Shown: piece after piece, positions 1 through 36,104 of the stretch | Position numbering within the stretch: position 1 is the stretch's first letter | How the letters are laid out: each line of letters begins with the position of its first letter | Made by a program: the position numbers and the translations under genes | The notes under the pieces: model-generated | The model's input: the letters and a program-made list of their open reading frames with translations, nothing else | Database searches by the model: none | Told to the model about the DNA's origin: nothing | From: Oopsacas minuta | Taxonomy: Eukaryota; Animalia; Porifera | Length of the DNA: 64,000 nt | Assembly: GCA_024704765.1 (NCBI GenBank) | Contig: JAKMXF010000099.1 | Location: 1-64,000 of the forward strand | Reading direction: 5' to 3'

Positions 1-3000
1 GGATTTGGACAACTTACTAATGGAAGATTAGACTTTGTAACGATCAGTGAAAACATATTTTTGTTCACCTCACATACATTAGCTTATGTAGGAGAAGAGA
101 ATATGGCCATTACATGGATATTTTCAGAGAATTCAGATCTATCATCTAGTCAACCAGAAACAGCAACCTATGAGGATATGGAAGCTGGATGGAGTTGGTT
201 AGCAGTTGATATTACCCAGCAAGGTTATTATCAGTGCAAAGCAAATTCAGCAACTTATACGATTGGATTGTTTGATCCATTCTTAACTACAGGTAAGTAG
301 ATTTTTCTGATATTTACTATACTAGCGTACAAGGGCGTTAATCCATGTTTCAAGGTAGGTGGGACGTTTTCATAAAGAATTCTACGAACTCCGAGCGTAA
401 TGAGCAACGGTAGTATGTCTTGGAGAGCTCGTACCTTTCCTCATTATTTCATTCCTAGACGGACAAATATTGATCAACGTATTTTCCTACCACCCAATGG
501 AGCCCGAATTTTTTTTGGTTTATACTAACAATATTTTCTTAAATGAGACTATCCCTGCAAATAGCTATATTAATGTTACCAAATTTAGTGAAAAGTTCCA
601 AAAATCTTCCTACGATTATCTGATTACACTATAAATATTCTTGCCAGTTGACGCACATCAACTTTATCAAGTTTTTCACAATGTACGTGGCAAACTGAGA
701 CACAATTCAATCTGTGCTGGGTCATTGTAGCTCTGAGCCAAGTTTTAAGACGCCTTAAAGCGGAAAAACTGCACTCACACTCGCACGAAGAAACAGGACA
801 CACAAGTAACAACTTCAGTAGAACAACTACCTGTGGAAATAAGGAGCGTACTTCAGGTGTCATACTCCGATAAGACAGTTTTGCGTCACTTAACGTATCT
901 GGCTTGTAGTTATGTTTGAATATCTCTAACTGCATTTGTAGTGAACATTTATCAAGTTCAGGATACTTAGAAATCACATCTAAATCAACTTTTCCAGACG
1001 TTAGCACGTTCTCCAACTTCATGTATTGGGCTAATCCAGATTAGCTAAGATCATAAATGTCTGATAGACCTTTGCTTACAGCATCGATAAATTCAAGATA
1101 CTGCTTCCTGTAATGTTCTTCAGGACTGGCAGGTTGATATTGTGCAACTTGATCAACATATCTTTTTGGAAGGCAACGTCTTCTTGGAATCTCTAGTGGA
1201 TCCAGTTCATATGTTTCACCTTTCTCCTTTGCAGTAATAAATATTTCATGGAACACTTCATCTGAATGCCATGCTCGGATAGACTCAGATGATATTTTTA
1301 CAGTTTCCAGCATTCCAGATACAGTAGCTGATTTTGCTTGCAATACACTATTCAACTGCTCTAGAAGTGCTACTGGCCTAGCTGCTATCATCAATCCAAG
1401 TAATGTCTCGCCTTTCTGAAAACGATTTAGAAGCCCGTTTGCTTTTGTTGCGGNGGTGGGTAATAATATTAGGGTATGATAGAATATGCAAAAGAAATCT
1501 TGATAACTTGAGTATCCTTGGACATAGAAATTCGATTAATATACCATTCAATAGCAAATATGCGACTTACTATTACCAAATAATATATATAAAGGGGCTA
1601 AGTCAAAGGAATTTGAAAATTCGGACAATATAAAATCAATTTTGCGAAAGTGACACAGCAAAAATATACAACCGCAAGGGTCAAATCGAAATATTTTTCA
1701 AATTTAAGTCTCGCATTTTCCTAGAAAATGGTAAAGGCAACTTTTCCCTTAGGTAGAAGTTGAACCGACGATTTATACTTTTCTCGATCCGGTCTACTTA
1801 CCAGATCTATTCCTGAGGACGCCTAGTTCATTTGTCCACTGTAAGGCGTTTCGAACGAATTGACTGGATATACGGCATTTTGCATCACGAGGTTTGAAAT
1901 ATGCGATGCACAGTGAAAGTAGAGCGCTAAGGGCTGACATTGTCTTACTCTTGCCTGACAACGAGTGTAATGGGTACTCATGTTTGCAGCTCCACCGTAC
2001 GTTTGGGCGCGTAGATTGCTTAATGGTAATGCAAACCGAGTTAAGACATCAAATACCATCCTGCAATAGATTCACTGGTAATAGTAGGATTTTCATATAT
2101 ACAGACAAATCTTCGTGTACATGTAGATCGGAGTTAACGTGCTTCAAACATATGGGCTCTTGCTCTCGACCACTAACATCTTGTTTCCCATCAACAGTAA
2201 TGGCAAAACATCCATGCTTTTTGAATGTCACTCACAACCTCTCTTACAATGCAATGACTGAACATTTCCATCATTTCTTCTTGTCCACGAGGAGAAATAA
2301 AATTGGTTGTTCGTTTCAGATAGACCCCTAGATCGGGATCATCTCCTGACCTAAGTTTCAAAAGCTGAAAATAATTTCTAGAAGTCTCATCATGGCCATG
2401 AATTGCATAGCCTTATCTTAGTAAATATTTTATCGAAGTAAATAACTTCAAAAGTGAATTCTTGAAATTTCTTGTTCTTTTAGTTTCTGTGTTTTCATTT
2501 GGACATTTGCAGCGGCCTTTTGATTATGGAAATCTGATTTATTGCTAGTTGGTGTGTGTGTGACATTTAATGTGACCTAAACTTTTAATGGGCCTTCTTC
2601 CAGTTGTCAAATCCATTTCGAATGAATTCTGGATCTTTACATCTGGCTAAATCTATTAATCCTAAGGCACTAGCTTTTGAGCAGTAGAAACACAGAACTT
2701 TTTTCAGACCCGAACTGTAATGTAGCCACTGATATTCTTGATGCCAGTTTCTCTGGAAATGAAGTGATCGTGATGGTAGTAGCTGAACAGGGATGACCGA
2801 TATATCTGGTTGATTTGGCTTACCCAAACTGGTGATGTTGTTTGCATTAGACATACTCGAAACTGATATCGAACTACTTGAACCATGTAAATAACAGGAT
2901 CCAGGTGTAGGGAATTCAGAGGGTCAGGGTCGTCACTGTCCAAATGTTGGGGTGTCTCATCAACGCAAACTGCGATGGAAGAACTCCTAGAACCAGATAT

Positions 3001-6000
3001 CGATTGCTGACGACAGGAATCATTTGAGTGAAAATTAAACTGAAGATCTTGTTCGTCATTTTCTGCTAAGCTAAGTATGACGACACAGGGCACACAGCTT
3101 TGACTTGAACCTGCTATTTCAGCGGTGCTAGACTCTAACGTGGGGTATACTACAGGCTGCTCGGGAATAAGAGAAAGATTAGAGAAAGAACTGGGCTGAC
3201 GATTATGTTCATCACTAACGCTGGCCCGCTCATTCTGCGGGATGTCTTTGAAAAATCTCTTAATTCCAGTCAGCTTTGCCCACTTTGAAATAACATTGTT
3301 TCGAGACATGGGTTTCAATCCGTTTCTTTAAGGAGATAATGGAGTTCTTATCTTGAACGATGGAACGCTAATAGTACATAAAAGGGGTCAAAAAATAAAA
3401 ATGACTGGTGGGGAAAATTTGCATTAAAATATTGAATGAGAATTATTATATCTATCTGTATTATAAACAATTTCAAAGACGAAAAAGTGGCGGGGGGGCA
3501 TTAAAATAGGCGTCTCCTCCAGTCCAAAAAGTGCGGGGACGCGTCCCCAAATCCCCCCAGGATTTACAGCCCTACTAGCGTGCTATACTTGCTCGAAATA
3601 TGCGGCAAAAAATGTTCATATGATTAATTCAAAAGTGTGAAAATTGGATTACGCAAATTTGATATTTTAGCCAAGTTATATAGCATTTTGTTTGCGTTAT
3701 TCATTACACGATAAATTCGTAATTATCAGGATCGCGAAATTCGAAATCATAATAGCATCCTCGAAAACCTTTTCCTTGAAGACGAACAAACAGACAAATA
3801 AACTACAATTGAGAGTTAATATCATAGATATTATCCCACTTGCAATTTCATTGACCGCAAATTCTTCCATTTAGTTGCAGCAGAAACTTCGTACCAATAT
3901 ATAGTTGGAATTGACAGAGAGGATGTATTACTGTTGTGTGATCCAATGGATAGTGGGAGTTTAAGCACATTGAGATGGACACTATTAGGTGGCGGAGAGT
4001 TTCTAAATCCTATCAATATATATAACTCAAGAGCTTATCTACCCGAAGATTCTACAGAATTTACTTGCAAGAGGGGTGCAACAATATTTTCAACAAACAC
4101 CATCAGTGTAATAGGTACATCTTGTATTTTGAATGAAATATTCTTTTGATCACAATTATGGATTCAATTGTTTGTAGCTCCCTCGTTAACTATAAGTTAT
4201 GGTGTTGTACCAGCTGGAAGCGTTTCACTACTCTATCCAGATATGAATACGCTAGCAGTTCCTTCAGTCGTACAAGATGTCACCCTGTCAATCAATATTG
4301 ATGGTAGTTGGACTCTTCAAGACAATACTTACTCTACAGGATCTACTTTAACCATTCCAAATTTTTCATCACAAGAAGATGGATTATACATGTTCTATGC
4401 TAACAATTGGGATAATGTTGTAGTATGTGTCATACAAATTCAATTGACATCTTCAGCTACAGTGACAGGTATGTTATATTATCAATGTTTCCTGAGGAAT
4501 TGTATGTTATCTGCCATACCACTCACATTCGATATATTCTGTTGAAAAGCTTTCGATCCTATCGAAAGTAATCGAATTGAATACAATATATTCCTGTAGG
4601 AACTCCAGATATTGAACTAACATATGACAATTCAGCAATTGGGTTCTTCACTAGCACTGATACAACATGGTTTACTAGTCAACTTGATTGCCTGAACTGG
4701 GGAGGAAATCTTGTTACAATCAAGTCAGCAATAGAAGATAGCTTACTGTTCTATAGTAGTACAGATGTCGATACATACTTTTCATGTTGGATAGGTCTAA
4801 ATGGTATAGAAATTGATGCTGGCATTGATGCCGATGCATTTGTGTGGGTAGATGGTAGTAACAGTACTTATAGGAACTTCGGTACACTTGGACATTCATA
4901 TCCTGTAGCAACAACCACTTGGGACTGTGTCAGAAACAGATATAAATCCACTGGTGAATTATCAACCGGTTGGGCAAATCAAGCATGCTCTGATACTACA
5001 AATTGTTACTTCTGCAGTAAACAAGGTAATTGATATATATCAAAAGGTCTTATTACACATTAGTTACTATAACCGTATTTTCATGCATTTTATCTCTAAA
5101 ATTTATAGTTAACTCACAAGGATGTGATCTGATCTATAATGGATTTTGCTATCGAGCCTTTGAAGTGAGTGATGCTATCAACTGGTTAGATGCACAATCT
5201 AGTTGTGCTTTATGGGGTGGTGATTTGACCAGTATTACTACAGAGAGAGATAGGAATTTCTTATACACTATTATCCCTGATACAGTGAGTAATTGCTGGA
5301 TAGGATTGAATGATAGAGATAATAACGATGGAACATATACCTGGATTGATGGTTTAGTATCTACTTATACTAATTGGCCAAATAGCCCACCAAATACGGG
5401 CAATGAAGACTGTGTAGAAATAACAAGTGCTGGAGGAGGTAGTTGGGAAACCGTGGACTGTGAAACAACCATAAATGCTTTTCTATGTAAAAGAGCTTCA
5501 TCTGTAACAACAGGTCAGTATATATTATTTATACTATAAACGTTAATAATTTGATATTGCATATGTGTATGCTTTAGCTGGTGGAGTATTTGGACAACTT
5601 ACTAATGGAAGATTAGACTTTGTGACAATTCGTGAAAACACATTTTTGTTCACCCCACATACATTAGCTTATGGAGGAGAAGAGAAAATAGCCATTAGAT
5701 GGCTATTTTCAGAGAATTCAGATCTATCATCTAGTCGACCAGAAACGCCAACCTATGAGAATATTGACGCTGGATGGAGCTGGTTAGCAGTTGATATTAC
5801 CCAACAAGGTTATTATCAGTGCGAGGCCAATTCAGTCACATATACGATTGGTTTGTATGATCCAGCCTTGACAATAGGTGAGCAGATTATTTTGATATTT
5901 ATTACACTAGCGTGGTAGGCTTGCTTGCACTGCCCCGCTTGCGAACACTTTGTGTTCGCATTGGACCCGATACTTCGTGCCTCGAATTGAGTAATTTTCA

Positions 6001-9000
6001 ATCTCTCAACATATTCCCAACACGTTGGTGATAATTCCCTATTTGTCATCAGCGTACACGTTTACCCCAGGTTATTGTTTGAAAGCACCTTTCTGGGATG
6101 AATTGGAAATTTGTGTGCTTTCTCCACCCATGATTGTAAGTAGTCACAATAGATAGTTTAAATACTACCCCTAATTCTCTCCTGAGACCAAACCTCTTGA
6201 ATCATAAATATTTTTCTTGATTGCACAATAACTACGCCATTATCCGGATCGCGAAGTTCGAATTCAGAATAGCATTCTAGAAATCGTTTTCCTTGACAAC
6301 AAATGAACAAACAATAATTTAGATTGAATTACATAGATATTATCCCACTTACTAATTTCCTGACATCAAATTCTTCTCTATAGTTGCTGCAGGAGCTTCC
6401 TCATACCAATATTTAGTTGGAATTGACAGAGAGGATGTATTACTGTTGTGTGATCCAATGGATAGTGGGAGTTTAAGCATGCTGAGATGGACTCTATCAG
6501 GTGGCGGAGTGTTTCATAATCCTATCAATATATATAATTCAAGAGCTAATTTACCAGAGACTTCCACAGATTTTACTTGCAAGAGGGGTGTAACTGTATT
6601 ATCAACAAATTCCATCAGTGTAATAGGTACATCTTGTATTTTGAATGAAATATTCTTTTGATCACAATTATGGATTCAATTGTTTGTAGCCCCCTCGTTA
6701 ACTATAAGTTATGGTGTTGTACCAGCTGGAAGCGTTTCACTACTCTATCCAGATGTGAATACGCTGGCAGTTCCTTCAGCAGTACAAGATGTTATCCTGT
6801 CAATCAATATTGATGGTAGTTGGACTCTTCCAGATAATACGGACTCTACAGGATCTACTTTAACCATTCCAAATTTTTCATCACAAGAAGATGGATTATA
6901 CAAGTTCTATACTAACAACTGGGATGATGTAGAAGTATGTGTCATACAAATTCAATTGACATCTTCAGCTACAGTGACAGGTATGTTATATTATCAATGT
7001 TTCCTGGGGAATTGTATGTTATCTGCCATACCACTCACATTCCATATATTCTGTTGAAAAGCTTTCAATCCTATCGAAAGTAATCGAATTGAATACAATA
7101 TATTCCTGTAGGAACTCCAGATATTGAACTAACATATGACAATTCAGCAATTGGGTTCTTCACTAGCACTGATACAACATGGTTTACTAGTCAGCTTGCT
7201 TGCCTGAACTGGGGAGGAAATCTTGTTACAATCAAGTCAGCAATAGAAGATAGCTTACTGTTCTATAGTAGTACAGATGTCGATACATACTTTTCATGTT
7301 GGATAGGTCTAAATGATATAGATGTAGATGCTAGTACTTATGCTGGTGCATTTGTATGGGTAGATGGTAGTAACAGTGCTTATAGGAACTTCGTTTCAGA
7401 AACTGGAATAATAAGTCCCTCAGGAGTTGCTGGTCATGATTGTGTTAGGTTCAGATACATGAATCTAGATGACCTATTATCAGCCGGTTGGATAAATCGA
7501 GCTTGTCAAATAACTAGAAATTGTTACTTCTGCAATAAACAAGGTGAGTGATAATACATAAAATATCTGACTCGAAATTGAGTACTTCAAGATAATACAT
7601 AGAAAATGGGTGAAGCATTGTGACATAGAGTTATGAATTCAATTCCATTCTTATATAATTCACTCAACTAGAAATACGTATTCTCAGAATGTAGTTTCAA
7701 ATTTTTGAATAGGAAACTCACAAGGATGTGATCTTATCTATGACGGATCATGTTATCGAATATTTGAATTGAGTACTGGAATCAACTGGTTAGATGCTCA
7801 ATCCAGTTGTGCTGTATGGGGTGGCGACTTGACTAGTATTACTACAGTGAGAGAGAATAATTACTTATACACTATTATCCCTGATACAGTGAGTAATTGC
7901 TGGATAGGATTGAATGATAGGAATGTAGAGGGAACTTATACCTGGACTGATCGTTCATTGTATAGTCATACAAACTGGACCGGAAGTGAACCAACTGTTA
8001 TTGATGAAGATTGTGTTAACATAATACGAGCTGGAGAGGGTAGTTGGGGGACTGTGGACTGTGAAACAATGAGAAATGCTTTTCTATGTAAAAGTCCTTC
8101 ATCTGAAACAACAGGTCAGTAATCCTGTGCCATTTGGATAATATTATATTTTGAATCAGCTAATTTTTCATATTCTGTTTTAGTTGGAGGATTCGGACAA
8201 CTTACCAATGGAGGATTGGACTTTGAAACAATTCGTGAAAACACTTTTTTGTTCACTTCACGTACATTAGCTTATGGAGGAGAAGGGAATATACCCATTA
8301 CATGGATATTTTCAGAGAATTCAGATTTATCATCTAGTCAACCAGAAACAGCAACCTATGAGAATATGCAAGTTGGATGGAGCTGGTTAGCAGTTGATAT
8401 TACCAAGCAAGGATATTATCAGTGTCAAGTCAATTTAGTAACTTATACGATTGGATTATATGATAATTCATTAACAACTAGTATGTATATCTTTGTGTGA
8501 TATATTCCATATATTATTATTCCACTTACTACTCTACTGACCTTAAATTCTTCCATTTAGTTGCAACAGAAGGTACTCCATATGTATACATAGTAGGGGT
8601 AGACAGAGAGGATGTATTACTGTTATGTGATCCTGTGGTCAGTGGTGATTTAAGTATGCTGAAGTGGTCTCTAACAGGTAGTGGAGATTTCCTGAATCCT
8701 ATCAACATATATAATGAGAGGAATAATTTACCAGAACAATCTACTGGCTTAAATTGTGTGAGAGATTCAAGTATTATATTTTCAAACTTTATCAGCGTAC
8801 AAGGTAACTATTTCATTAATTATTATTCTTTGATTATTTTGATTTTGATACTACAGGGAACATATTTATGCTGACCATATAATGGACTGGCTGTTAGAAA
8901 GAAATGATGCGGAAATCGTATTAGTCTCCATTTGCATGTGTTACATTGTAGGTTCCATTATATCTATATTAATATTGTGTGTTTGTTTTAGTTCCAGAAA

Positions 9001-12000
9001 TAACAATTCAAATTGGTAGCATCAGTGCTATTAAATTCACGGAAGTCTGTCCAGCTATGAATGAAATAGATATTGCATTAACAACAAAAGATATCACTCT
9101 TTCTACCAACATTGATGGGAAATGGAATATTCTTGGAACTACCAACTCTACTGGATCTACTACAATAATTGGTAATTTCATTGAAAGAAATGCTGGATTA
9201 TATAAATTCTATATGAACAACTGGGATGGAGTTGATGTGTGTGCTATACAAGTTAATCTTTCATCTTCATCAGCTATTACAGGTAACAGTTACTTGATAT
9301 TTGTAATTAATTTTATGCTCGCCGAGATTGAATTTGATGATTAACATGATAATAATTTTGTTTGTTAGCAATGAACCCAGAACAAGAATTTATATTAGAT
9401 GATACTACTTTTGGATATTTTACAATTTCCTCTGGGATCAACTGGATAACTGCACAACTCAATTGCATCAACTGGGGAGGAAATCTTGCTACAATCAAGT
9501 CAGCAGAAGAAGACAGCTTATTATTCTATAGCATAACAGATTTAGATAATGCTTTTTCATGTTTAATTGGTCTAAATGATATAGATGTAGATGCTGGTAC
9601 TGATGCTAGTGCATTTGTATGGGTAGATGGTAGTAACAGTACTTATAGGAACTTCCAATCTGATTTTGGAATAGTAAGTCCCTCAGATATGTTGCCTCGT
9701 TATGACTGTGTTAGATTCAGATACCAAGTCGGAGGTGTAGTATCAACCGGTTGGATTAATCGACAGTGTGATGTTACTAGAGTTTGTTACTTCTGCAATA
9801 AACAAGGTAGGTTATTATTGGTGACAATATAATACCTTAATATATGTATCACCTGAATATAATACATCCAGGAATGAAAAGACAAGAAATTAAATTGCTA
9901 AGATGTTTATCCGTCTTTCAACGAAGATTTATTACGTATAATACGTTCAATCTACAATTTATAGTTACGTAACTTCAATTAGGCTAATTTCTATAATATT
10001 ATTTCGCATCAAAACAGTAGTTCTTGAATTGTTAATGACGAATATCAGCATAGTTAATCAACTGATATGATAATATTGTGACTTATACAAGTCGAACAAT
10101 GCCAAAATTTCATATTTCGAGGTTAACCTATACGTATAATACATTACAATACATCGCGTATACCGTATTATACAACTTAGTTAAAAAGACAAGAATAAAT
10201 GTAAATTCATTTCTTATCAATCAACCATACACTAAACATGTATTCTCAAACATATATTTTCTGAATTTGATAGGTAATTCACAAGGATGTGATCTGATCT
10301 ATGATGACTTTTGCTATCGATTATTTGAAGTGAGTACTGGAATCAACTGGTTAGATGCTCAATCTACTTGTGCTGTATGGGGTGGTGATTTGACTAGTAT
10401 TACTACAGTGAGAGAGAATAATTACTTATACACTATTATCCCTGACACAGTGAGTAATTGCTGGATAGGATTGAATGATAGGAGCGTGGAGGGAACATAT
10501 ATCTGGACTGATGGTTCAGTATATAGTCATACAAACTGGACAGGAAGTACATCAACTGTTATTGATGAGGATTGTGTTGACATAATACGAGCTGGAGAGG
10601 GTAGCTGGGGGACTGTAGACTGTGAGGATACTCTAAACACTTTTATATGCAAAAGAGCTTCAACTAGTACTATAACAATAGGTTTGTGACTTTATACTAC
10701 GGATATACATATATTTTAGAAATTTTTCATATTGACAATGTCTACCTTCAGTTGGTAGATTTGGAGAACTCACCAACGAAAGATTTGACTTCCAACTGAT
10801 TAAGTCAAATACTTTCTTGTTCACTTCACTTACATTAGCTTGTGGAAGCAATGAAAATAATGTTATCGTCTGGAATTATTCTGTTAACTCGGATCTATCA
10901 AATGGTGAAGTACTTACAGCAATATATAGTAGTACAGAGAATGGATTGAGCTGGCTGACAGTTGATATTTACAAACAAGGATATTATCAATGTCAAACCA
11001 ATTCATTAACTTTTACTATTGGTTTATATAATACATCCTTAACAACAGGTGAGTATATATTTCTGATATTTTCTATAATATCCCACTACTACTCATTGAA
11101 CTTGAATTCTTCTATTTAGTTGCAGCAGGAGTTTCATACCAATATATAGTTGGAATTGACAGAGAGGATGTATTACTGTTATGTGATCCAATGGATAGTG
11201 GAAGTTTAAGCACATTGAGATGGACTTTATCAGGTGGCGGAGAGTTTCATAATCCTATCAATATATATACTTCAAGAGCTGATTTACCGGAGGCTTATAA
11301 CGAATTTACCTGCAAGAGAGATGCTACTGTATTTTCAACAAATACCATCAGTGTAATAGGTACATCTTGTATTTTGAATGAAATATTCTTTTGATCACAA
11401 TTATGGATTCAATTGTTTGTAGCTCCTTTGTTAACTATAAGTTACGGTGTCGTGCCTGCTGGAAGCTTTCAACTACTCTATCCAGAGATGAATACGCTAG
11501 CAGTTCCTTTAGCAGTAAAAGATGTTATCCTGTTAATCAATATTGATGGTAGTTGGACTCTTCCAGATAATACGAATTCTACAGGAACTACTTTAACTAT
11601 TCCAAAATTTTCATCACGAAACAATGGAATATACAATTTCTATACTAACAACTGGGATAATGTTGAAGTATTTATTATCCAGATAAACCTGACATCTTCA
11701 ACTACACTGACTGGTATGTTATCGCTCAATTGAGACACAATCAGTGAAAATGACTGGTAGTGCAGCTAAGTGATAATTATGTGTTTTGTTCTTTTCATGG
11801 GGGGTGGCACGACCCCTAGACCCTCCCGTATTGATGTCGCAATGCACCAGACTCCTTCCAAATTTGGGCTTAACGGCTGGATCTCAAAAATATTTAAAAC
11901 TATTCAATAATATTTGCCCATGCTTAACTTCATATTTTATCCTCAAACCCTATGGATAAAATTCCATGTAATATTCCCACAATTACCTTCTGTCTAACCT

Positions 12001-15000
12001 TTAAACGGGATCATCGGCACCAATTTAAAATATAAGCAAAAGCCTGCGAAATATTATTCATCATACGATTACTCACTGAATGAGAGATTTGGAAATGTCT
12101 CGAATATACTTCACTAGCAATTACAACGAAATCTCTAGAGTCATTTTGAAAATACAAATTGATGTGGAGTAGGATTAATCATATGCAGAGGCATAGCTAT
12201 CATTTCTTCTTCGGGGTTACGATTGAGGCTGCTGACAATTTATCTGGTATTGCTAGCAACTCCAATAATACTGAATCCACAGCAATGCAGGGGTTGCAAC
12301 TTGAGATGATGACGATCGCGCCGGGGTTGCCAGTAACCCCTTAGCTACTCCAATGATCATATCATCAATCATGTAGATATAGATTTGAAAATTTGAAATT
12401 AGAAATCTACATACTCGGTTACCCTGACTAGCAGGTAAAACGAAATTTGTAGCATAATTTGAAAAATATGCCAAAAGGTGTGAAATATAATAATCATTTA
12501 ATATATCTGTGAATTAGTAGCTCTGAAAATCTCAATATCGGGCTCTACACGCATAATTACCCTTACCAACAGGTTGAGACCTAATCTCTAGCATGAATTT
12601 GAAATTACTTAGAAGGTCTAAAAATATGATTAACTACCAAAAGGTTTGAAATATTAACTTGAAAATATTCATTCTCTGACCCATGATGTATATTTTCGTG
12701 TAAATCTTACTGTTAGATTTCGCACGGCAGCGCAGACGGACGTAAGTACGGACATCGTACATCGTCAAAGCTATTAAGGCATCTGCCTATAGGAGCTGTA
12801 CTAAAAACTCCTACATTGTATCAAATCGAAAAGTTATCGAATTTAATAAAATTTATATTATAGGAATCCCGGATATTGAACTAAAGTACGATAATTCAGC
12901 AATTGGGTTCTTCACTACCACTGATATATCATGGTTTACTAGTCAACTTGATTGCCTGAACTGGGGAGGAAATCTTGCTACAATCAAGTCAGCAATAGAA
13001 GATAGTTTACTGTTCTATAGTAGTACAGATATAGATACATACTTTTCATGTTGGATAGGTCTAAATGATATAGAAAATGATGCTGGTACTGATGCTAATG
13101 CATTTGTGTGGGTAGATGGTAGTAGTAGTACTTATTGGAACTTCGGTACACTTGGACAATCATATCCTGTAGCAACAGCTGCTTGGAACTGTGTCAGAAA
13201 CAGATATAAATCTACTGGTGAATTATCAACCGGTTGGGCAAATCAAGCATGCTCTGATACTACAAATTGTTATTTCTGCAGTAAACAAGGTAATTGATTA
13301 TATCAAAAGATGTGTTACTCCTTAGTTACTATAACGGTATTTTCTGGTATTTGATCGCATCTGAATTTGTAGATAACTCACAAGGATGTGACCACATCTA
13401 TAAAGGATCATGTTATCGACTATTTGAAGTGAGTATTGGAGTCAACTGGTTAGATGCTCAATCTAGTTGTGCTGTATGGGGTGGTGACTTGACTAGCATT
13501 ACCACACAAAGAGAGAATAATTACTTATACACTATTATCCCTAATACAGTGAGTAATTGCTGGATAGGATTGAATGATAAGAGTGTAGAGGGAACATATA
13601 CTTGGTCTGATGGTACAACAGTTAGTTATGCAAACTGGACAAATCTCCCAACTACTGCTGGTGATTGTATTGAGATTAAAACAGATGGAGGTGTTAGTTG
13701 GGAAACTGTGAACTGTGAGGATGCTCTAAACACTTTTGTATGCAAAAGAGCTTCAACTAGTACTGTAACAATAGGTTTGTGACTGTATACTACGGATATA
13801 CATATATTTAGGAATTTTTCATATTAACAATATCTACCTTCAGTTGGTAGATTTGGAGAACTCACCAACGAAAGATTTGACTTCCAACTGATTAAGTCAA
13901 ATACTTTCTTGTTCACTTCACTTACATTAGCTTGTGGGGGGGAAGAAAGTAATAATATCATATGGAATTTTTCTCAAAACTCAGATTTATCGAATGGTGA
14001 AGTCCTTGCAGCAACATATTGTAGTACTGAAAATGGATTTAGTTGGTTAGCAGTTGATGTAAATAGACAAGGTTATTATCAGTGCCAAGCAGATTCATCA
14101 ACTTATATTATTGGTTTATATAATACATCCTTAACAACAAGTGAGTATATTATTCTGATGTTTTCTACCTACGTATTCCACTTACTAATTCATTGACTTC
14201 AAAATCTGTAATTTAGTTGCTGCAGGAGCTTCCTCATACCAATATATAGTTGGAATTGACGGAGAGGATGTATTACTGTTGTGTGATCCAATGGATAGTG
14301 GGAGTTTAAGCACATTGAGATGGACTCTATTAGGTGGCGGAGAGTTTCTAAATCCTATCAATATATATAATTCAAGAGCTAATTTACCAGAGACTTCTAC
14401 AGAATTTACTTGCAAGAGGGGTACAACTGTATTATCAACAAATTCCATCATTGTAATAGGTACATCTTGTATTTTGAATGAAATATTCTTTTGATCACAA
14501 TTATGGATTCAATTGTTTGTAGCTCCCTTGTTAACTATAAGTTACGGTGTTGTACCAGCTGGAAGTGTTTCACTACTCTATCCAGAGGTGAATACGTTAG
14601 CAGTTCCTTCAGCAGTACAAGATGTTATCCTGTCAATCAATATTGATGGTAGTTGGACTCTTCCAAATAATACGGACTCTACAGGATCTACTTTAACCAT
14701 TCCAAAATTTTCATCACAAAAAGATGGATTATACAAGTTCTATACTAACAACTGGGATAATGTAGAAGTATATGTCATACAAATTCAATTAACATCTTCA
14801 ACTACAGTGACAGGTATGTTATATTATCAATGTTTCCTGGGGAATTGTATGTTATCTGCCATACCACTCACATTCCATATATTCTGTTGAAAAGCTTTCG
14901 ATATTATCGAAAGTAATCGAATTGAATACAATATATTCCTATAGGAACTCCAGATATTGAACTAACATATGACAATTCAGCAATTGGATTCTTCACTAGC

Positions 15001-26397: not shown

Positions 26398-27315
26398 CAG
26401 TCAGGGGACAAAAGTATTCGACCACACAAATATATTGTCATAAATTGTATACTCTTTCCCGCTCCTATATATTGTGTAGTCTATATTCGTAGCTGCTATC
26501 TAGTAATTTGTATAGAATAACATATGTTTTTCAAGAATTTCAAAAAATTATTTTAGATTGACACTTTTTGAAGGTGTTAATTATTAATAATTATTAGATT
26601 ATTATTGATAATCAAAATATGTGGTAATTCAAAACCTATTAAGAATCTATAATTTCTGACTTGATATTTGAATTCTACGTAGGCGAGTTACCCCAGATTG
26701 AAATTTCCAATCGGATTGAGCAAATTTACCAGAGTTATTGATGACTTTCAATTTTGTGCCATTTGTGCCACCTTTTTGCCGAAGGTGGCATAAGTGGCCG
26801 CTACCAAGAGGTTATTTTGGAATTCAAGGGTTAGCATAGTCATATCATTCGAAAATATTACTTCGACTTATTTCTCCTAACCCTAGTTGATTTCCTTGTA
26901 GTGGCGCTTTTTCCTGCTACCTGTGCCACTTTTTTCAAAAAGTGGCACAAGTGGGACAAATTGAAATTCTTTTATAACTTTGGTAAAAATTGCTCAATCC
27001 GATTGGAAATTTCAACCTGGGGTAACTCGCCTACGTAGAACTCAAATATCAAGTCAGAAATTATAGATTCTTAATAGGTTTTGAATTACCACATATTTTG
27101 ATTATCAATAATTATCTAATAATTATTAATAATTAACCCCTTCAAAAAGTGTCAATCTAAAATATTTCTTTGAAATTCTTGAAAAACATATGTTATTCTA
27201 TACAAATTACTACATAGCAGCTACGAATATAGACTACACAATATATAGGAGCGGGAAAGAGTATACAATTTATGACAATATATTTGTGTGGTCGAATACT
27301 TTTGTCTCCTGACTG
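26398..27315. mobile_element. 918-bp foldback element (Tc1-like ends, ~370-bp TIRs)
   Basis: TA|CAGTCAGGGGACAAAAGTATTCGACCAC ... GTGGTCGAATACTTTTGTCTCCTGACTG|TA. Arms ~26398-26765 and ~26945-27315 are near-perfect reverse complements around a ~180-bp spacer. No coding capacity. Confidence 0.9.
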
Positions 27316-28018
27316 TATATATACAATAGACTCCGCGTTCTATTTAATAGAACATCGATTAATCTTGTCAACTTGGTTATTCTGGGGTCAAGGAGCCAGA
27401 CACAGAACCATACAAATAGTATTAATTTATTTCAGTTAATCGGGCCAACATCATTATTCCACTTTATCTGGTTAAAATGGCCTTGTCCAGATGTGACCCT
27501 ATTAAGAGGACTTTAGTGAAGTAGGATACTCAACAAATCGGGATTATGTTATTCTATCACTGATAAATATTAATACACAACTATATAATTTAGTATACAA
27601 TATAATTTCCTTAAGTTTAAATACTCGTCACACCACGGTAATACAACAGGTGTATATAATTCTACAAATAATGATTACATTGGAATATTTAGATAACATT
27701 TATATTCATGTGGACTATGGCACTGATCTCATTTCCTGTATTAGATAAGACAGGATAATCTACAAATTCGGGGAAGAATTACTCTATAGGGTGTCGGTGA
27801 GTGTACCAAACTACCAACAATTGTTTCCAAGAAACTAAAACTAAAACTCTGCTAATAACGTATTGCAAAATAGTGTTGTGTTCCAATGTACTCAAATGAT
27901 ATATCAAATTTCTGAAGTTGTAAATTATCCTCTCAAATACATTGTATGACTATATAATGAAATCAGTAGATAATTTATTAATCATCAATTTAAATCTAAA
28001 CTCCTGAAGAAATTGAAC

Positions 28019-31000
28019 ATGAAAACTCTCTGTTATAAAATTGGATTATTCTTAGCTATAATTGGTTCATTGATTAGAATCAGATCAGGTGAGTACCTTA
28101 ATTAGAATTTATGTGTAAACATCTAGTAAATGTATTAGACTAATAGTTATCATGAATACTCAGTTAATTATTTACATATTTGAATGTATTTGTTGTGCTT
28201 TAGCTCAAGCTCCGGTTCCGGACCTTGCGTTTACATTCGATGATACTGACTTCAGTTTCTTCACGCTGGCAGAAAATAATATTAATTGGGTTGAAGCTGA
28301 AACAGAGTGCATAAATTGGGGAGGACATCTTGCTACAATCAAGTCAGAACAAGTTGACAGCTTATTCTACTATACTATAGAAGATATACAGATATATACT
28401 TCCTGTTATATAGGTCTGAATGATAGGCAGAATGACGCTGGTACTAATGCTAGTGCATTTGTATGGGTAGATGGTAGTACTAGTAGTTATAGAAAGTTCG
28501 GTAATACTCCTGGTACGATACAATACCCCATTGGATTAGGTCCGAATAATATTCATGATTGTGTTAGGTTAAGGTACAGAAGTGGGACTGGAATATCAAA
28601 CGGATGGATAAATGGGGCTTGTACCCTAGGTAGAAACTGTTACTTCTGCAATAAACCTGGTAAGTTATCAATCAAGAATAATTTGTATGAATACATTAGA
28701 ATGCTAATATCTTAACTCTATATTACAGCAGTATTATTGAATAGTACCAATTCCATAGGTGTACGAGGAAGGTTAAGTGGAGTATTAGCAATAATTAGAA
28801 TGTTGAATGAATTATTAAGGGACCTTAACTCCTTAAGCTCCTAGCAGTTAAATTAATTACTACACGTCACTGTATACTTGGAGAATTGATAGTAAGTCGA
28901 CTAATATATAGGCAAATTTCATTGTATTTATTTTCCAGTAACACCCAGTGAATGTGATCTGATCTATGATGGATTGTGCTATCGATTGTATGAAGTGAGT
29001 ACTGGAATCAACTGGTTAGATGCTCAGTCTAGTTGTGCTGTATGGGGTGGTGACTTGACTAGTATTACTACAGAAAGAGAGAATAATTACTTATACACTA
29101 TTATCCCTGATACAGTGAGTAATTGCTGGATAGGATTGAATGATAGGAGTGAAGAGGGAACATATACCTGGACTGATGGTTTAGTATATAGTTATACAAA
29201 CTGGATAGGGAGTGAACCATCTAATTTTTATGAAGATTGTGTTGACATGATAAAAGCTGAAGGGGGTAGTTGGGAGACTGCGGACTGTGAGATAACAACT
29301 ATAAAGACATTCTTATGCAAAAGACCTTCATCTGTAACTACAGGTCAGTATAATAGGAATGCTACAATACTATATAAATAATAGCTATTGGATACAATAA
29401 ATTATACAGATCATATTTTAGCGGTGAGATTTGGACAACTTACTAATGGAAGATTAGAATTCGAAACAATTAGTGAAAACACTTTCTTGTACAAATCACT
29501 AACGTTGGCTTGTCGAGGAGATGAGGCTAGTGCTATTGTATGGAAATTTTCAAAAAACTCAGATCTATCAAATAGTGTATTCATGACAGCAACATATAGT
29601 AGTACAGATACTGGATTAAGTTGGTTAGCAGTTAATATTAATAAACAAGGATTTTATCAGTGTCAAGTCAATTCATTAACTTATACGATTGGTTTGCATG
29701 ATACGTCCTTAACAACAGGTGAGTAGATCATTCGTTAATATATTCAAATATTTTCCACTTGTACTTTCGAACCTCCAATTCTATCTAGTGGCTGTATCAG
29801 GATCTACATACACGTATATAGTAGGAATAGACAGAGAGGACGTATTACTGTTATGTGCTCCTACTGACACCGTTAGTTTGAGTTTGTTGAGATGGACTCT
29901 ACTTGGTGCAGTAAGTAATACAGATTTTCTAAATCCTATCAACATCTACGAAGAGAGGGATAATTTATCTGATCAATCTACTGATTTCAATTGTATGAGA
30001 GGTTCAAGTACACTTTCTACAAACTTCATCAGTGTGAAAGGTACCGGTAACTATTTATTTCTATCCAGATTGTCTCAGAAAACTACCGCGGGAGTGGAAC
30101 CAAGGTTACAACCGAATAATATTTTGAGAATAATTCAATATTCGGTTACCAACCGAATATCAGTATTCGGTTGATTTCGCCGAATAATATCTGTATTTGG
30201 TTAGCTATTCATGAACACTGATACCCGATTAGATCGGTTTCAACCCTGCGCGGAACCTAGTGGTTGCTATACAGGTTGATTAGTATGAAAACTATATTTC
30301 GAGATTGTATTGTTTGTTATGTACATGTGTCGACTATATAGAGATTCAATGACAATAAGTTCCACTTTAAATAAATACAATTATTTTTTTAGTTCCAGAA
30401 TTAACCATTCAAATTGGTAGCATCATTGCTAGTAGATTCACAGCCGTATGTCCAGTTGTGAATGAGATTGTCATTCCATTAACAACAAATGATATTTCCC
30501 TCTTTACTAATATTGATGGGAAATGGAATATTCTTGGAACTACCAACTCGACTGGATCTACTACAACAATTGATAATTTCATTGAAGGAAATGCTGGATT
30601 ATATAAATTCTATATGAACAACTGGGATAGAGTTGATGTGTGTGCTATACAAATTACTCTTATATCTTCACCTGCTATTACAACAGGTAATATAGACATT
30701 GTTACTTTAGTATTTAATCTTGGAAATTCGAAGAATAGACTCGGGTCTAGTTATTACGAACGCAAGCGACCGTCCAGATCTGTACTCCTTGTAGATAGTT
30801 TCCTAATTCAATTTAGAACTAATTATCCAGGTGGATATAGTTCACCAAATCAATAGAGGAAAGTAAGTATTCACTAAATATTAAGCTTAGCTATACATTT
30901 GTGAAAAGGATAAATTAGTTCAGCTGATGGCTTTATGATATCCTTCATGTATAATTTAGCAATAAGAGAAATTTCAACAGCTAAGACTACTTTTGGATAT

Positions 31001-34000
31001 TTCACGAATTCTGCTAACATAAACTGGATAACTGCCCAACTCTATTGCATCAACTGGGGAGGAAATCTTGCTACAATCGAGTCAGTAGAAGAAGATAGTT
31101 TATTGTTCTATAGTATAACAGATTTAGCTATATCTTATTCTTGTTGGATAGGACTGAATGACATAGATATAGATGCTGGTACTAATGCTGATGCATTTGT
31201 TTGGATAGATGGTAGTGCCAGTAGTTATAGGAACTTCGATTCACTTTTGGTACCAAATCCCTCAGATGCAAATGCTAATTTTGACTGTGTTAGCTTCAGA
31301 TACAGATACAGGAGTGGAGCACAAGTATTATCAACCGGCTGGATTAATCGAGGTTGTGGTAACATTAGAAATTGTTACTTCTGCAGTCAACCAGGTAAGC
31401 GATCGGTTTTTAACAACCAAATAATAAATTATCCATGAAACTAGATTGTGAGTTAAATGAAATTCCGTCCTTTCAACCCACCAAACTCGCAGTTACTATT
31501 CTCAAAAATTTAGTTTCATAATTTGAATAGGTAACTCACAAGGATGTGATCTGATCTATGATGAGTTTTGCTATCGATTATTTGAAGTGAGTGATGGAAT
31601 CAACTGGTTAGATGCTCAGTCTAGTTGTGCTGTATGGGGTGGTGACTTGACTAGTATTACTACAGAAAGAGAGAATAATTACTTATACATTATTATACCT
31701 GATATAGTGAGTAATTGCTGGATAGGATTGAATGATAGGAGTGTAGAGGGAACATATACCTGGACTGATGGTTCAGTATATAGTCATACAAACTGGACAG
31801 GGAGTGAACCATCTAATATTTATGAACATTGTGTTGACATAATAAGAGCTGGAGAGGGTAGTTGGGGGACAGTGGACTGTGGAACAATGAGAAATGCTTT
31901 TCTATGCAAAAGACCTTCATCTGTAACAACAGGTCAGCATAATAGGAATGCTACAATACTATATACATAATAGCTATTGGATACAATGTAATTACATAGA
32001 GCATGTTTTAGCTGTGAGATTTGGACAACTTACTAATGGAAGATTAGACTTTGTAACAATTAGTGAAAACACATTTTTGTTCACCTCACATACATTAGCT
32101 TATGGAGGAGAAGAGAATATAGCCATTACATGGATATTTTCAGAGAATTCAGATCTATCATCTAGTCAACCAGAAACAGCAACCAATGAGAATATACAAG
32201 GTGGATGGAGCTGGCTAGCAGTTGATATTACCAAACAAGGATATTATCAGTGTCAAGTCAATTCACTAACTTATACGATTGGGTTGTATGATCCATCCTT
32301 AACAACAGGTCAGCATATTTGGTACTCTTTGATTAGCCCAACTCATTTATCATTCTAATGTTCCATCTAGTTGCTGTATCTGGAACCACATACAACTATA
32401 CATTAGGAGTAGACAGACAGAATGTAGTGCTGCTATGCGATCCGATGGATAGTGGTAACCTGTCTGCGTTAATATGGTCTGTAGAGGGTAGTGCTACTCT
32501 TCCCAATCCAATCAACATATACAAAATGATTGGTGACAAGTCCATGGGTTACTATAGCATCAATTGTTCGAGAGATAGTGATGAAATATCAAAAAACAAA
32601 ATTTATTCTAGAGGTAGTGTGTTACGATTAAGAGATATGTTATCCAATTATCCTCACATTATTTCCTCTAGTACCACAAATAATCCTCCAATATGGTGAT
32701 CTCATTATTGAAAAATTTTCATCAGTTTATCCTGTCATGAATAATATTGAAATTCCTATTGGTATCACAAACATTTCTATTTCAAATACCATTGAGGGTA
32801 GATGGATGCTACCTGATGGAAGCTATTCATTCTCTACTCTAGAAATTTTAACTTTCACATCACAGTACAAAGGCGTGTATAAGTTATATATTACCAACTG
32901 GGATGGGCTAGAAGTCTGTGCAATACAGATCAATATTACTGTAACAACTGATGGAATTGGTAATCTATATATTTAATTCTCAATTGTTGTTAATTTGATT
33001 ATTTGTCTGTTTGTTTGTCTGTCGTCAAGGAAAGGATATACGGTATGCAATGTTGTCGCATAACTATGTATTTATCGTATTTATCAGGCAGTAATGTATT
33101 TCAATACAACTTAACTAAACATATCTAAAATACTGAATCCGATTTTGACATTTTTGATTGATCATATGTAAAATTATTGCTGTTTTATTAAAATATAGTA
33201 AACAAATTATCCTAATCTCAAACTATAAGTACAGGCTTGCTGAATCAAAATTTCGCATTTTCAAGTTGCTCATATTTAAATTTATAGTTATATTTATGCA
33301 TATAAAGTGAACAAATTTCAAATTGTTATAGAATCATAATTTCAAAAACTATACTGGGGTAATCGAGTATGCTGAGTCCGAATATGGCATGGAATATTTG
33401 TTAGTCCGTTGATTAGTAAATTTATTGTTGGTGTTTTATGAATATAAAGTAAACAAATTAGCACAATCTCAAAATTTACATAGATACTTACTCTCAACGG
33501 CTACAAAGGAGGTTGGTTTTCCAAAATAATTCAATAATATATATACCATATAAGTATATTTGTGAATTGCATGTTCTAAATATATCTGTATTATAATACC
33601 AGGGTCATGTGTGCCTATTTTATCTGCCCAGGTTAAACCCAAATATAAAACATCAGTGCTTCCCATCAGTCATAGCTTTTCTGATTAATACCATATTTTG
33701 AGGCTAGTCTGAAAATTATGGTATGTGATAACTGTATATTGTGTGTTCTTCATAAAGTTAATATTACATTTTTCCACCGTTTTACTTTCATCTTAAATAG
33801 ATAAGAACATATTCAGGTCCTCCAAGTTAACGTGTATGTTTTTAGCATACATACAAGCACCTTATTATGGTTGGTCATGCCATATGGCCAGGACATGGCC
33901 AGGTTGACCGGGCCATGTGACCAATTTCAACCTGGTCAAAACCTGGTCTGGAAAAATTCTGCTCAAGTTTGACTTGGTTAGTTTGCATTACTGGCATGCC

Positions 34001-36104
34001 CTGAATACTCAAAGGGGCCGTCAATTTGGAGGATAATGGATACTTCGAAGCACAATGCGTTGAGTTCATCGCGAAGCGACAAGCCAAAGGCTCGTAGATA
34101 TTTAATAGTAACATCCCCGCATGCTACACAGGGAATAGAATAATATGCAATCCATATATTAACAGTATTGTTTTCTAGAAGAAATAACCAACTTTAACAT
34201 TCCGTTACAAGTAAACTATACTGTTGGTTCAATTATTGATATACTCTACTATTCATACACAGAAATTCCAGATACTAAAATACGTTGGACAACAGACCCT
34301 GTAAACGATGGGGAAAATATGGAATACAGTATTGAGTACCCAAATCCTGTGTTGTTGATTGCAGTATTCTCTAATGTGGGAGCAGGTTTGCATACAATAA
34401 CTTCGTTCTATAGGATGAGTCCAATTACTTCTCTAGGAAGTCTCCAGCTAGCAATCAAAGGTTTGTTGATATTATATATTAAATCATTAAATTATCTATC
34501 ATATATTTACAGATACAGTAGAAGTAACAATCAGTTATGAAGGGTACACCTTTACCACAAGTGATATTAGTAATGAAATATTTCCATCACCACAAGTAAT
34601 CAGTATACTTCAAGGGACAAAAGATATTACGTTAACCTGCAGTCTACCTGTATGTGTATGGAAGATTTCAAATGAAAAAGATACAATAATTGCATCTACA
34701 AATAGTATATCAGAAATAACTCTTAACTTTTACGAGAGTTTCTCATTGGTTCGCTCTACAAGTTCTGGTGTAGAATATACAACAGCACATATTACTATAC
34801 AAACTCCAAAAGAAGCATCAACAAACAGCACTCTGGTACCCATCATAATCATTGTGTTATTATTGATATGTATAATTGTAGCTACAATTATTCTAGTTCC
34901 AATATTCATCTTTCTATATGTAAAGAGAAGAAGACCAACAAAGGTTAAACTATCTAAACGTCCTAAACCCTCCAAATCCAATATAACAGGTGACGAAAGT
35001 AATCCTGATTATACTATTCTATCAGAGATGAATCCACAAACTAAAAAGTACATAGATCTCTCAGTAAATACAAATCCTGACGATATGACAATAGATGGGA
35101 CATCAATAACTACTCTAGACGCACCCACTAATCCCAATGAACGAGGTTATGCAAATTTGTCAAACATTCCACACCAAAATGTAACAAAAAAAGAGAAAAG
35201 AGGTTATATTGAAATGAAGGAAGTCCTGACTTATGAGGAATACACACCCATGAATCCTGTAGAGGAAGAAAACAAATTCACAGCAAAATTCATACCAATA
35301 AAAGAATTCCCTACAATGTATCAACAGTATGTAGAATCTGGAATAGGAAATGATTCATTATTTTCTGTAGAATTTCAAAAGTTAAATGAAGATTCTAAGA
35401 AGGCTGTTGCATCAGAAAGTTACGATGCATTGAAAAAGGGTAATTTGCAAAAGAATCCTATCAAAAACATTCTACCATTTGATGAAAACAGAGTTGTATT
35501 AGATTCTCCACACTTTGTCTGTGACTACATCAATGCTTCATGGTTAGAAAGTTTTCAATTCATTGCTACCATCAATCCAACTCTAGAGACACATCTAGAT
35601 TTCCTACAAATGATCTATCAAACAGAAGCTAGTATGGTGATAATGCTGACTACGAGAAAGGAGAAAGCTACGATACTCAGTGGAATATCTAATCGTATCT
35701 GTTACTGGCCTAAGAAGGATGAACCTATCAATTGTGAACCTTTTGTTTCTACTTTGATCAATTCTACAGAAACGAATGCATTTGTGAAACAGGAAATCTC
35801 TTTGAAGAATACTTTAGCAGGAAAGGAACACTCATTCACTCAGTGTATATCTCCGATATGGAATGAAGATGGTACTGTATTTGAAATGGCTTTAGCTGAT
35901 ATACTTTTGATCAGAATTATGAAACAGAAACAAGACTCAAATAATGTTCCTATAATTATCCATTGTGAAAATGGTATCTCTAAGACTGGAATAATCATGA
36001 CAGTGTTGAATTCAATTAGAGAACTTAACATGAGAAAATCTATCAGCATCTTCAATGCTGTTAAGAACTTACGTAGACAGAGAATAAACATGGCTCCTAC
36101 CTTG
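28019..36104 (+). CDS. Gene B: receptor-type protein tyrosine (pseudo)phosphatase; signal peptide + (CTL-CTL-Ig-Ig-Ig)x2 + Ig-like x2 + TM + Tyr-rich segment + single PTP domain; final exon unresolved
   Basis: Exons 28019-28088 (MKTLCYKIGLFLAIIGSLIRIRS, signal-peptide-like), 28204-28659, 28939-29343, 29422-29718, 29789-30040, 30393-30686, 30960-31394, 31531-31932, 32012-32308, 32371-32613, 32672-32959, 34179-34460, 34513-36104. They sum to 5313 nt = 1771 codons in one frame. PTP motifs: ILPFDENRVVL, DYINAS, IATINP, CYWP, IIIHCENGISKTG, VKNLRRQR. GTAAGT donor at 36105. Confidence 0.85.
30101..30248. mobile_element. Old hAT-like MITE in intron d-e of gene B
   Basis: Ends CAAGGTTACAACCGA / CAGGGTTGAAACCGA (reverse complement of right end); degenerate 8-bp flanks AGTGGAAC / CGCGGAAC. 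Confidence 0.4.
32964..34094 (+). mobile_element. Helitron-like repeat inserted 4 nt after a splice donor of gene B
   Basis: GTAA|TCTATATAT...TTGTCTGTTTGTTTGTCTGTCGTCAAGG start and GCGAAGCGACAAGCCAAAGGCTCG|T end; similar to 25511-26103. Probably carries a nested insert at ~33600-34003 (CAGGG..CATG ends). Confidence 0.55.

Follow-up and report, generated by a model that had tools for sequence, protein, structure and literature searches.

What kind of proteins are encoded by a long run of repeated lectin-like and immunoglobulin (Ig)-like exons in the genome of the glass sponge Oopsacas minuta, and what could such proteins be used for? The exons lie on contig JAKMXF010000099.1 (assembly GCA_024704765.1), whose positions 1 to 64,000 on the forward strand, 64,000 nt of AT-rich DNA (G+C 30-39%), were analysed here and are referred to as the window. 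They belong to two genes, A and B, and to a decayed copy, C. With a probability of about 70%, we regard this locus as a tandem cluster of large type I surface receptors that are restricted to glass sponges and descend from a two-domain receptor-type protein tyrosine phosphatase (RPTP). The ectodomain is assembled from one-domain exons of phase 1-1, each cassette of which contributes a pair of C-type lectin-like domains (CTLDs) and three beta-sandwich Ig-like domains. Tandem duplication has raised the number of cassettes and copies have exchanged cassettes with one another, giving rise to the giant tail-less A, the two-cassette signalling gene B and the decayed C.

Cassette organization of gene A

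Alignment of plus-strand stop-to-stop frames revealed five exon types that recur in the order CTLa-CTLb-D1-D2-D3, and repeat finding gave 6-8 copies of each type, about 2.2-3.1 kb apart. Exon models were assembled from the conserved AG and GT sites that border each frame. Gene A, whose 5' end lies beyond the window, comprised 35 exons and, when spliced, 3,852 codons with no stop ahead of the terminal TAG. On the basis of our own hidden Markov models (HMMs), its domains are ordered as D1 D2 D3, six complete CTLa-CTLb-D1-D2-D3 cassettes, D4, and D5 with a transmembrane (TM) helix and an 11-residue tail. All 33 internal exons are flanked by AG and GT splice sites, are of phase 1-1, measure 240-447 nt and are divisible by 3; the same was true for all 10 internal exons of gene B, in which no stop in frame was found. 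The explicit exon models therefore bore out what had been proposed from the letters of the window: six complete cassettes and a partial one in A and two in B, symmetric phases with lengths divisible by 3, stop-free exons in both genes and a size of A above 3,850 codons. The features of gene A are as follows.

1-23813 (+), gene A, partial: 35 exons, 3,852 codons plus stop (exon model and translation)
1-292, 3875-4114 and 4178-4468 (+), partial cassette 0 of A: D1, D2 and D3, respectively
4600-6980 (+), cassette 1 of A: CTLa 4600-5025, CTLb 5109-5513, D1 5578-5877, D2 6384-6626, D3 6690-6980 (Pfam Lectin_C for both CTL exons)
7112-9282 (+), cassette 2 of A: CTLa 7112-7543, CTLb 7713-8114, D1 8184-8480, D2 8561-8803, D3 8992-9282
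9369-11713 (+), cassette 3 of A: CTLa 9369-9806, CTLb 10274-10681, D1 10752-11048, D2 11120-11359, D3 11423-11713
12864-14813 (+), cassette 4 of A: CTLa 12864-13289, CTLb 13373-13774, D1 13844-14140, D2 14217-14459, D3 14523-14813
14945-17065 (+), cassette 5 of A: CTLa 14945-15376, CTLb 15631-16032, D1 16101-16397, D2 16473-16712, D3 16775-17065
17163-19502 (+), cassette 6 of A: CTLa 17163-17609, CTLb 18011-18418, D1 18480-18776, D2 18924-19166, D3 19221-19502
19566-19850 (+), exon D4 of A: membrane-proximal beta-rich domain
23365-23813 (+), last exon of A: D5, TM helix, tail KRRKGNKDMEGS and stop

The TM helix of A has no charged residue, and no endocytosis motif could be identified in the 11-residue tail. 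A hAT transposase remnant (hAT dimerisation domain; 624-1022, minus strand) is located inside the 3.6-kb first long intron of A, in cassette 0, and a zinc-finger open reading frame (ORF; 21300-21929, minus strand) is located within the D4-D5 intron.

A repeated structure of this size could also arise if the cassettes of A were a misassembled repeat family, or if A were an untranscribed relic. Our read mapping covered the B region only, and the presence of C indicates that copies at this locus do decay. However, every cassette is distinct, with synonymous divergence (dS) between cassette copies of 0.06-0.9, and all splice sites of A are intact (34 of 34 acceptors and 34 of 34 donors). A frame of 3,852 stop-free codons cannot persist at this base composition without selection, and contigs of the DNA-like runs described below matched the B region, introns included, with 0 mismatches. 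The assembly-artefact and pseudogene readings of A were thus rejected on sequence distinctness and intact frames, and either would now be very surprising.

Structure and splicing of gene B

Gene B has a complete coding sequence, in the order signal peptide, two cassettes, D4, D5, TM helix, a Tyr-rich juxtamembrane region and a phosphatase-like domain. Translation starts at the ATG at 28152, and the first exon joins a typical signal peptide to CTLa (N-terminus MNTQLIIYIFECICCALAQA|PVPD). The TM segment is hydrophobic over about 30 residues and is bordered by KRRR on its C-terminal side. The last coding exon was located by a motif search matched to the C-terminus (GCYRTCYSLMNEYCSIHL) of an O. 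minuta relative, P0086. Position 36104 had been taken as the boundary of this region; exon 12 does end there at a GT donor, but the gene continues to 37478. The features of gene B are listed below, where X3 is one of four sequencing runs.

28152-37478 (+), gene B, complete coding sequence: 13 exons, about 1,783 amino acids (splice joints in X3)
28152-30686 (+), cassette 1 of B: signal peptide and CTLa 28152-28659, CTLb 28939-29343, D1 29422-29718, D2 29789-30040, D3 30393-30686 (Pfam)
30960-32959 (+), cassette 2 of B: CTLa 30960-31394, CTLb 31531-31932, D1 32012-32308, D2 32371-32613, D3 32672-32959 (three joints in X3)
34179-34460 (+), exon D4 of B: joints 32959|34179 and 34460|34513
34513-36104 (+), exon 12 of B, 1,592 nt: D5, TM helix, juxtamembrane region and most of the phosphatase-like domain (35400-36104)
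37422-37478 (+), last coding exon of B: 18 codons, phase 0, ACYTTCYSLLNEYCSIHL plus stop, completing the phosphatase-like domain

The four runs came from one sample and were mapped to 30350-36349, that is, the B region only. Three of them appeared DNA-like, with intron depth similar to exon depth. X3 was called RNA-like from its depth pattern: exon depth was high, the intron at 30750-30949 had no coverage, and depth past 36150 was about 3. Five GT..AG joints were present in X3 at exactly the predicted bases (30686|30960, 31932|32012, 32613|32672, 32959|34179 and 34460|34513) and were absent from all three DNA-like runs of the same sample. Gene B is spliced as predicted. Two acceptors just past 36104 (36152 and 36311) were considered for the last intron and ruled out, since an X3 depth of about 3 at 36150-36349 indicates that these nearer sites are unused. 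In further X3 joints, the inserted letters matched the starts of paralogous D1 exons, among them the 10-nt start of the A exon at 5578; paralogues, possibly including A itself, are therefore spliced too. No cassette-skipping joint was found among the X3 joints listed for the B region, a listing that excluded 13 joints. In the DNA-like runs, the CTLb exon reached about 40-60 times the baseline depth, which fits nucleotide-invariant islands common to all copies and implies dozens of copies in the genome. In the same runs, three short stretches of the 1.2-kb D3-D4 intron of B (32950-34150) had 100-700 times the baseline depth and represent high-copy repeats.

The phosphatase-like domain of gene B

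To avoid confusion with exon types D1 and D2, the membrane-proximal and membrane-distal domains of protein tyrosine phosphatases (PTPs) are called PTP-D1 and PTP-D2 here. The C-terminal domain of B matched Pfam Y_phosphatase (PF00102; E = 4.7e-40), and with a signal peptide, an ectodomain, a single TM helix and this domain inside the cell, B has the layout of a receptor-type PTP. Classical RPTPs were its best matches, and within RPTP alpha the score was higher for PTP-D2 than for PTP-D1 (77 vs 58 bits). Alignment to RPTP alpha and sigma showed KNPI in place of KNRY, WNE in place of WPD, and HCENGISKTG in place of HCSAGxGRTG, the last with Lys for Arg. In PTP chemistry, this P-loop Arg binds phosphate and stabilises the transition state, so little or no catalysis is predicted for B. 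Its motifs predict a PTP-fold pseudophosphatase of the membrane-distal PTP-D2 type and not an active classical PTP; the PTP tail named in the original prediction is thus confirmed as a Y_phosphatase match, whereas an active enzyme is not what the motifs indicate. No tandem arrangement of PTP-D1 and PTP-D2 was present in the window, in which tblastn gave a single PTP-like stretch.

The same P-loop, HC(E/Q)DGISKTG, was found in about 100 of the 120 proteins retrieved with the last large exon of B, and the ratio of nonsynonymous to synonymous change (omega) of B relative to the O. minuta copy was 0.27-0.62. Both observations argue for a maintained variant and not for decay. One O. minuta protein (KAI6650360.1) combines a (D1-D2-D3)x3-D4 ectodomain and a TM helix with a canonical PTP-D1 (WPDHDVP, VHCSAGVGRTG) followed by a K-type PTP-D2 (WNEKGEP, IHCVDSIGKTG). 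From such sequences we infer a two-domain RPTP as the ancestor of the family, with loss of PTP-D1 and retention of PTP-D2 in B-type genes.

Several Tyr motifs occur in the juxtamembrane region of B, including NPDYTIL-x9-YIDL, which resembles an immunoreceptor tyrosine-based activation motif (ITAM), as well as RGYANL, RGYIEM and YEEYTPM. The ITAM-like motif is conserved in the O. minuta protein P0095, and the pattern was present in 15 of the 36 relatives that could be scored under a strict TM filter, although the density of Tyr (about 7 in 128 residues) makes matches by chance a real possibility.

Distribution of the family

A lineage-specific, expandable receptor had been proposed, and the searches agreed with it. 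A D2-D3 profile identified 148 clusters at E <= 1e-3 among 1.84 billion cluster representatives. A look-up of sources, which covered long and mid-length hits as opposed to short exon-sized ones, assigned eight of ten to O. minuta, one to an ENA protein and one, marginal, to a frog. Automatic annotation has labelled the members in O. minuta as, for example, 'Macrophage mannose receptor 1' or 'Low affinity IgE Fc receptor'. The family is large and undescribed, and its range seems confined to glass sponges. The nearest named relatives were all O. minuta proteins, and many of the 120 hits to the B tail were located on few common contigs, implying tandem arrays. Such an array was seen in a 652-kb ENA contig (ERZ25072730), which contains at least three family genes arranged head to tail, all ending in D4-D5-PTP; two of them were complete in the stretch read and had one and two CTLa-CTLb-D1-D2-D3 cassettes. 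Other module orders were identified in O. minuta with our HMMs, such as CTLb-D1 units and D1-D2-D3 triplets. Cassette number and content, which had been predicted to vary, thus do so between genes (6.6 vs 2 cassettes in the window, one to two in the ENA contig and other orders in O. minuta), but variation between splice forms was not supported, as no skipping joint was listed.

An O. minuta contig aligned to the window with 77-97% DNA identity. The locus with the closest relative of B is rearranged relative to the window, and an assembly error there is possible. At L001:4756-7560 of the O. minuta contig, the PTP-like exon occurs as an inverted pair upstream of the ectodomain gene matching B and not after it, which may be a real rearrangement or an assembly problem.

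The architecture had not been recognised from any characterised family, and this was in line with the literature: we found no paper on the family, on the automatic name RyPTPR4a or on sponge CTLD/PTP receptors, and the two published glass-sponge genome papers contained no mention of the family, lectins or phosphatases.

Lectin-like domains

Both CTL exon types matched Pfam Lectin_C (E = 1.8e-6 and 7.5e-7 for CTLa, 1.4e-19 for CTLb) and conserve CWIGLND and the paired cysteines that fit the CTLD profile. The EPN/QPD and WND motifs of Ca2+ site 2 are absent: CTLb carries EPS/EPT and WGT/WET in their place, and CTLa has neither motif. On their sequence, CTLa and CTLb are CTLDs, and lectin activity is not implied. 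Since the canonical Ca2+/sugar motifs are missing, the ligand is probably a protein or a non-canonical glycan. Near-invariant nucleotide islands, synonymous sites included, were observed in every CTLa exon (TGGGGAGGAAATCTTGCTACAATCAAGTCAG; 4690-4725 and equivalents) and every CTLb exon (CCTGATACAGTGAGTAATTGCTGGATAGGATTGAATGAT; 5270-5320 and equivalents). They persist even between A and B, whose flanks show dS of about 0.3-0.6, and could be conversion tracts or anchors, or exonic splicing signals.

Among solved structures, the CTLDs of DEC-205 (LY75), PLA2R, Endo180 and MRC1 were closest to CTLb. This likeness suits an ordinary adhesion or uptake receptor, whose CTLD/Ig arrays would hold syncytial tissue to matrix or spicules or, as in the mannose-receptor family, capture food bacteria for endocytosis, with no discrimination of self from non-self. 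The very long ectodomain of A with its 11-residue tail, the purifying selection seen overall (omega about 0.5) and the high exon depth in the RNA-like run also fit such a role. Yet the N-terminus of B has no Cys-rich (CysR) or fibronectin type II (FNII) domain, the A tail lacks an endocytosis motif, and more than 100 paralogous signalling tails with rapid structural turnover would be unusual for a structural adhesion protein. We therefore treat adhesion or uptake as a minority possibility.

The mannose-receptor family (MRC1, PLA2R1, LY75/DEC-205 and MRC2/Endo180) likewise consists of type I receptors with long tandem series of CTLDs, most of which lack sugar-binding motifs, and the tail of A is short. 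However, these proteins have N-terminal ricin-type Cys-rich and FNII domains before 8-10 CTLDs, whereas the signal peptide of B runs straight into CTLa. In the present family, CTLD pairs alternate with sets of three Ig-like domains, a single phase 1-1 exon encodes each CTLD, and some members end in a PTP-like domain.

Ig-like domains

Conserved residues differed among the three domain types. In D1, Trp and YYQC are invariant and the B-strand Cys is present in 6 of the 10 copies, giving a C..W..YxC signature; in D2, C..W..C is invariant; and D3 has no Cys pair. With D1, D2 and D3 as profiles, PDB sequences gave only sub-threshold Ig matches (NCAM2, TCR beta, titin and KIT; E 0.02-1). For structure prediction, D1-D2 and D2-D3 were modelled as contiguous references of the window via two in-frame introns, and the other exon copies served as the alignment. 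The D2-D3 model had a mean predicted local distance difference test score (pLDDT) of 71, with 70-89 in its D3 part. The modelled D3 superimposed on Ig domains with Z scores of 6.5-7.7 and root-mean-square deviations of 2.2-2.9 A over 70-88 residues, the matches being amphioxus IgVJ-C2, KIT, IgLON, LAG3, CEACAM, NCAM and CD4 D2. The top Foldseek matches of both tandem models were tandem Ig proteins (CD4, IgVJ-C2, IgLON and antibody light chains). Thus, the Ig-like label has good support for D3 and is plausible for D1 and D2. D5 bears a weak likeness to D3. A protein atlas gave PKD or bacterial Ig-like domains for D4 (scores 0.85-0.87), which is a lead only, and nothing usable for D1 (best score 0.59).

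Evolution of the cassettes

Pairwise Nei-Gojobori omega among cassettes was 0.3-0.5, and over whole exons no pair class exceeded 1, barring one D2 pair with a dS of 0.055. Tree-based counts with 12-15 copies per domain gave omega values of 0.48-0.61. Within CTLa, omega of the long loop was 1.10 vs 0.54 elsewhere (Fisher p = 0.002), and the equivalent stretch of CTLb had 0.74 vs 0.43 (p = 0.017). The long loop of CTLDs is their usual ligand-binding region. As the CTLa value was not significantly above 1 (binomial p = 0.39), the loops are considered the freest parts of these domains, and positive selection is not claimed. A value of 8.9 in CTLa codons 37-48 was rejected as an artefact of near-zero synonymous change there.

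The nearest relative of a cassette varied with exon type: D1 of the second cassette of B grouped with cassettes A0-A2, D2 and D3 placed A1 beside A4, and CTLa and CTLb placed A2 beside A5. Between B and its O. minuta relative, dS was 0.1-0.19 for CTLb, D5, TM and PTP and 0.40-0.74 for D1-D4. We read these patterns as the probable outcome of exchange between copies and of unequal crossing-over, one instance of the latter being a higher-order duplication of three cassettes in A.

C is a decayed copy of the 3' end of A.

48438-54409 (+), pseudogene C: copy of A from CTLb of cassette 6 through the TM exon

It is 81-99% identical to the last cassette of A and lacks CTLa; indels shift the frame of CTLb, D3 and D4, and D2 is interrupted by an in-frame stop. 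An insertion with two ORFs (50775-52574, plus strand), neither of which matches Pfam, splits C, and a mariner-like fragment lies upstream of it (47402-48124, plus strand).

Possible function and relation to known receptor systems

Sponges fuse with or reject their neighbours and host dense microbial communities, and we know of no recognition receptors in glass sponges. Judging from the sequence, a recognition role in the broad sense, whether of microbes or particles, of self and non-self, or between cells, is the likelier function of the cluster. In such a role, the CTLD long loops, as the fastest-evolving parts, and the Ig-like domains would bind ligands; clustering of receptors could lead to phosphorylation of the juxtamembrane Tyr motifs; and the catalytically crippled PTP-D2 might act as a phosphotyrosine-docking or regulatory module. 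Gene A may serve as an adhesion, decoy or co-receptor partner.

A narrower proposal is a polymorphic allorecognition or immune locus at which individuals would differ in alleles and cassette number, and these differences would govern fusion or rejection, or the recognition of pathogens. The tandem multigene family with its variable cassette number, the mosaic exon genealogies, the presumptive binding loops that evolve fastest, the ITAM-like and other Tyr motifs, and the many copies implied by near-identical CTLb words at about 40-60 times the baseline depth would all suit it. In contrast, no omega was significantly above 1 in comparisons of paralogues, no exon-skipping joint was among those listed, and the TM helix of A is without a charged residue for adaptor pairing. 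A locus of this kind therefore seems unlikely on present analysis. It is similarly doubtful, though conceivable, that glass sponges possess a germline-diversified system for recognising self and non-self or microbes, in which more than 100 RPTP-derived receptors would have CTLD/Ig cassettes shuffled by unequal crossing-over and gene conversion, ITAM-like motifs coupled to a Lys-type PTP-D2 pseudophosphatase, and tail-less giants such as A as partners. If this were true, it would represent an immune-receptor logic independent of the Ig superfamily (IgSF) with inhibitory motifs (ITIMs), of the NOD-like receptor (NLR) and of the Toll-like receptor (TLR) systems known elsewhere.

It should be noted that several points weigh against the reading of the locus as a cluster of RPTP-derived recognition receptors. 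First, none of D1-D5 matched a Pfam family at E <= 0.01, Ig families (I-set, V-set, C2-set and ig) included, and the AlphaFold model of D1-D2 was weak (pLDDT 57), too poor for a firm fold call. The Ig-Ig-Ig triplet of the original prediction consequently held in part: D3 is modelled as an Ig-like sandwich (Z about 7.7) and D1 has its C..W..YxC signature, but a Pfam Ig match is missing and the models of D1 and D2 are weak. Second, relaxed constraint explains the CTLa loop omega equally well. Third, the P-loop with Lys may retain some activity, its inactivity being deduced from known PTP chemistry. Fourth, no further tail-less D5-TM exon was retrieved by a search whose length filter limits the meaning of this result, so that the idea of paired tail-less and signalling receptors rests on this locus. 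Finally, the library type of X3 has no record, and the sole hint of A expression is the one joint with the 10-nt start of the 5578 exon, which could come from a paralogue.

Classical RPTPs (RPTP alpha/epsilon, and LAR/PTP sigma/delta of type R2A) share with B the type I membrane topology and the Ig-like ectodomain, and an O. minuta family member likewise has an active-motif PTP-D1 followed by PTP-D2. B differs in having a PTP-D2-type domain only, with KNPI, WNE and CX5K, and its family differs in the added CTLD pairs, the repeated five-exon cassettes and the more than 100 paralogues in tandem arrays. Judged by its motifs and domains, B lacks the catalytic signature of a classical PTP, the sugar site that defines a C-type lectin and the domain set of the mannose-receptor family, and would be placed in the PTP-fold and CTLD superfamilies; it fits the IgSF only in part. 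Four unstudied O. minuta proteins, KAI6658950.1 ('Ladderlectin'), KAI6650360.1, KAI6661271.1 ('Macrophage mannose receptor 1 isoform X2') and KAI6650284.1, are true members of the family with the same D1, D2, D3, D4, D5 and CTL modules. Their names were assigned by automatic annotation only, and the modules follow other orders, with CTLb-D1 units and D1-D2-D3 triplets. Over 694 residues, the ITAM-like motif among them, KAI6658950.1 shares 70% identity with B.

Hydractinia Alr, Botryllus fuhc, fester and uncle fester, and vertebrate KIR, Ly49 and LILR offer a resemblance in way of working only. Such clusters also consist of tandem modular Ig or CTLD receptors with a variable domain number and have Tyr-motif tails beside tail-less forms. 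In the sponge cluster, however, signalling would use a pseudophosphatase and not recruitment of SHP by ITIMs or a charged-TM adaptor.

The locus provides a concrete candidate set for recognition or adhesion in glass sponges, which is large, tandemly arrayed and fast in structural turnover and which has lectin-like and Ig-like modules in frame-neutral exons. The regulatory PTP-D2 of a tyrosine phosphatase appears here to have been turned into the sole, strongly conserved intracellular module, and thus may offer a natural case for stand-alone function of a PTP-D2 pseudophosphatase. In addition, the cluster illustrates with clarity how exon cassettes were amplified in an animal of an early-branching lineage. 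Even if its role were ordinary adhesion, our results would be a useful correction of annotation for proteins named 'mannose receptor', 'ladderlectin' or 'Fc epsilon receptor'.

Other elements in the window

Downstream of gene B, NHL-repeat-like open frames are present at 43265-44287 (plus strand; YVADWESNRVQIF). The O. minuta contig likewise has an NHL gene (L001:18958-19677), 4 kb downstream of the closest relative of B, which hints at a conserved neighbourhood. A six-frame HMM scan identified D3-like and D1-like fragments of the family at 56523-57451 (minus strand), probably another gene fragment or pseudogene. At 62875-63972 (minus strand), an ORF combines a MULE transposase domain with a C-terminal C3HC4 RING finger. 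An intronless ORF of 404 amino acids at 59927-61138 (plus strand) matched Sulfotransfer_2 (E = 2.2e-33) and adjoins the receptor cluster.

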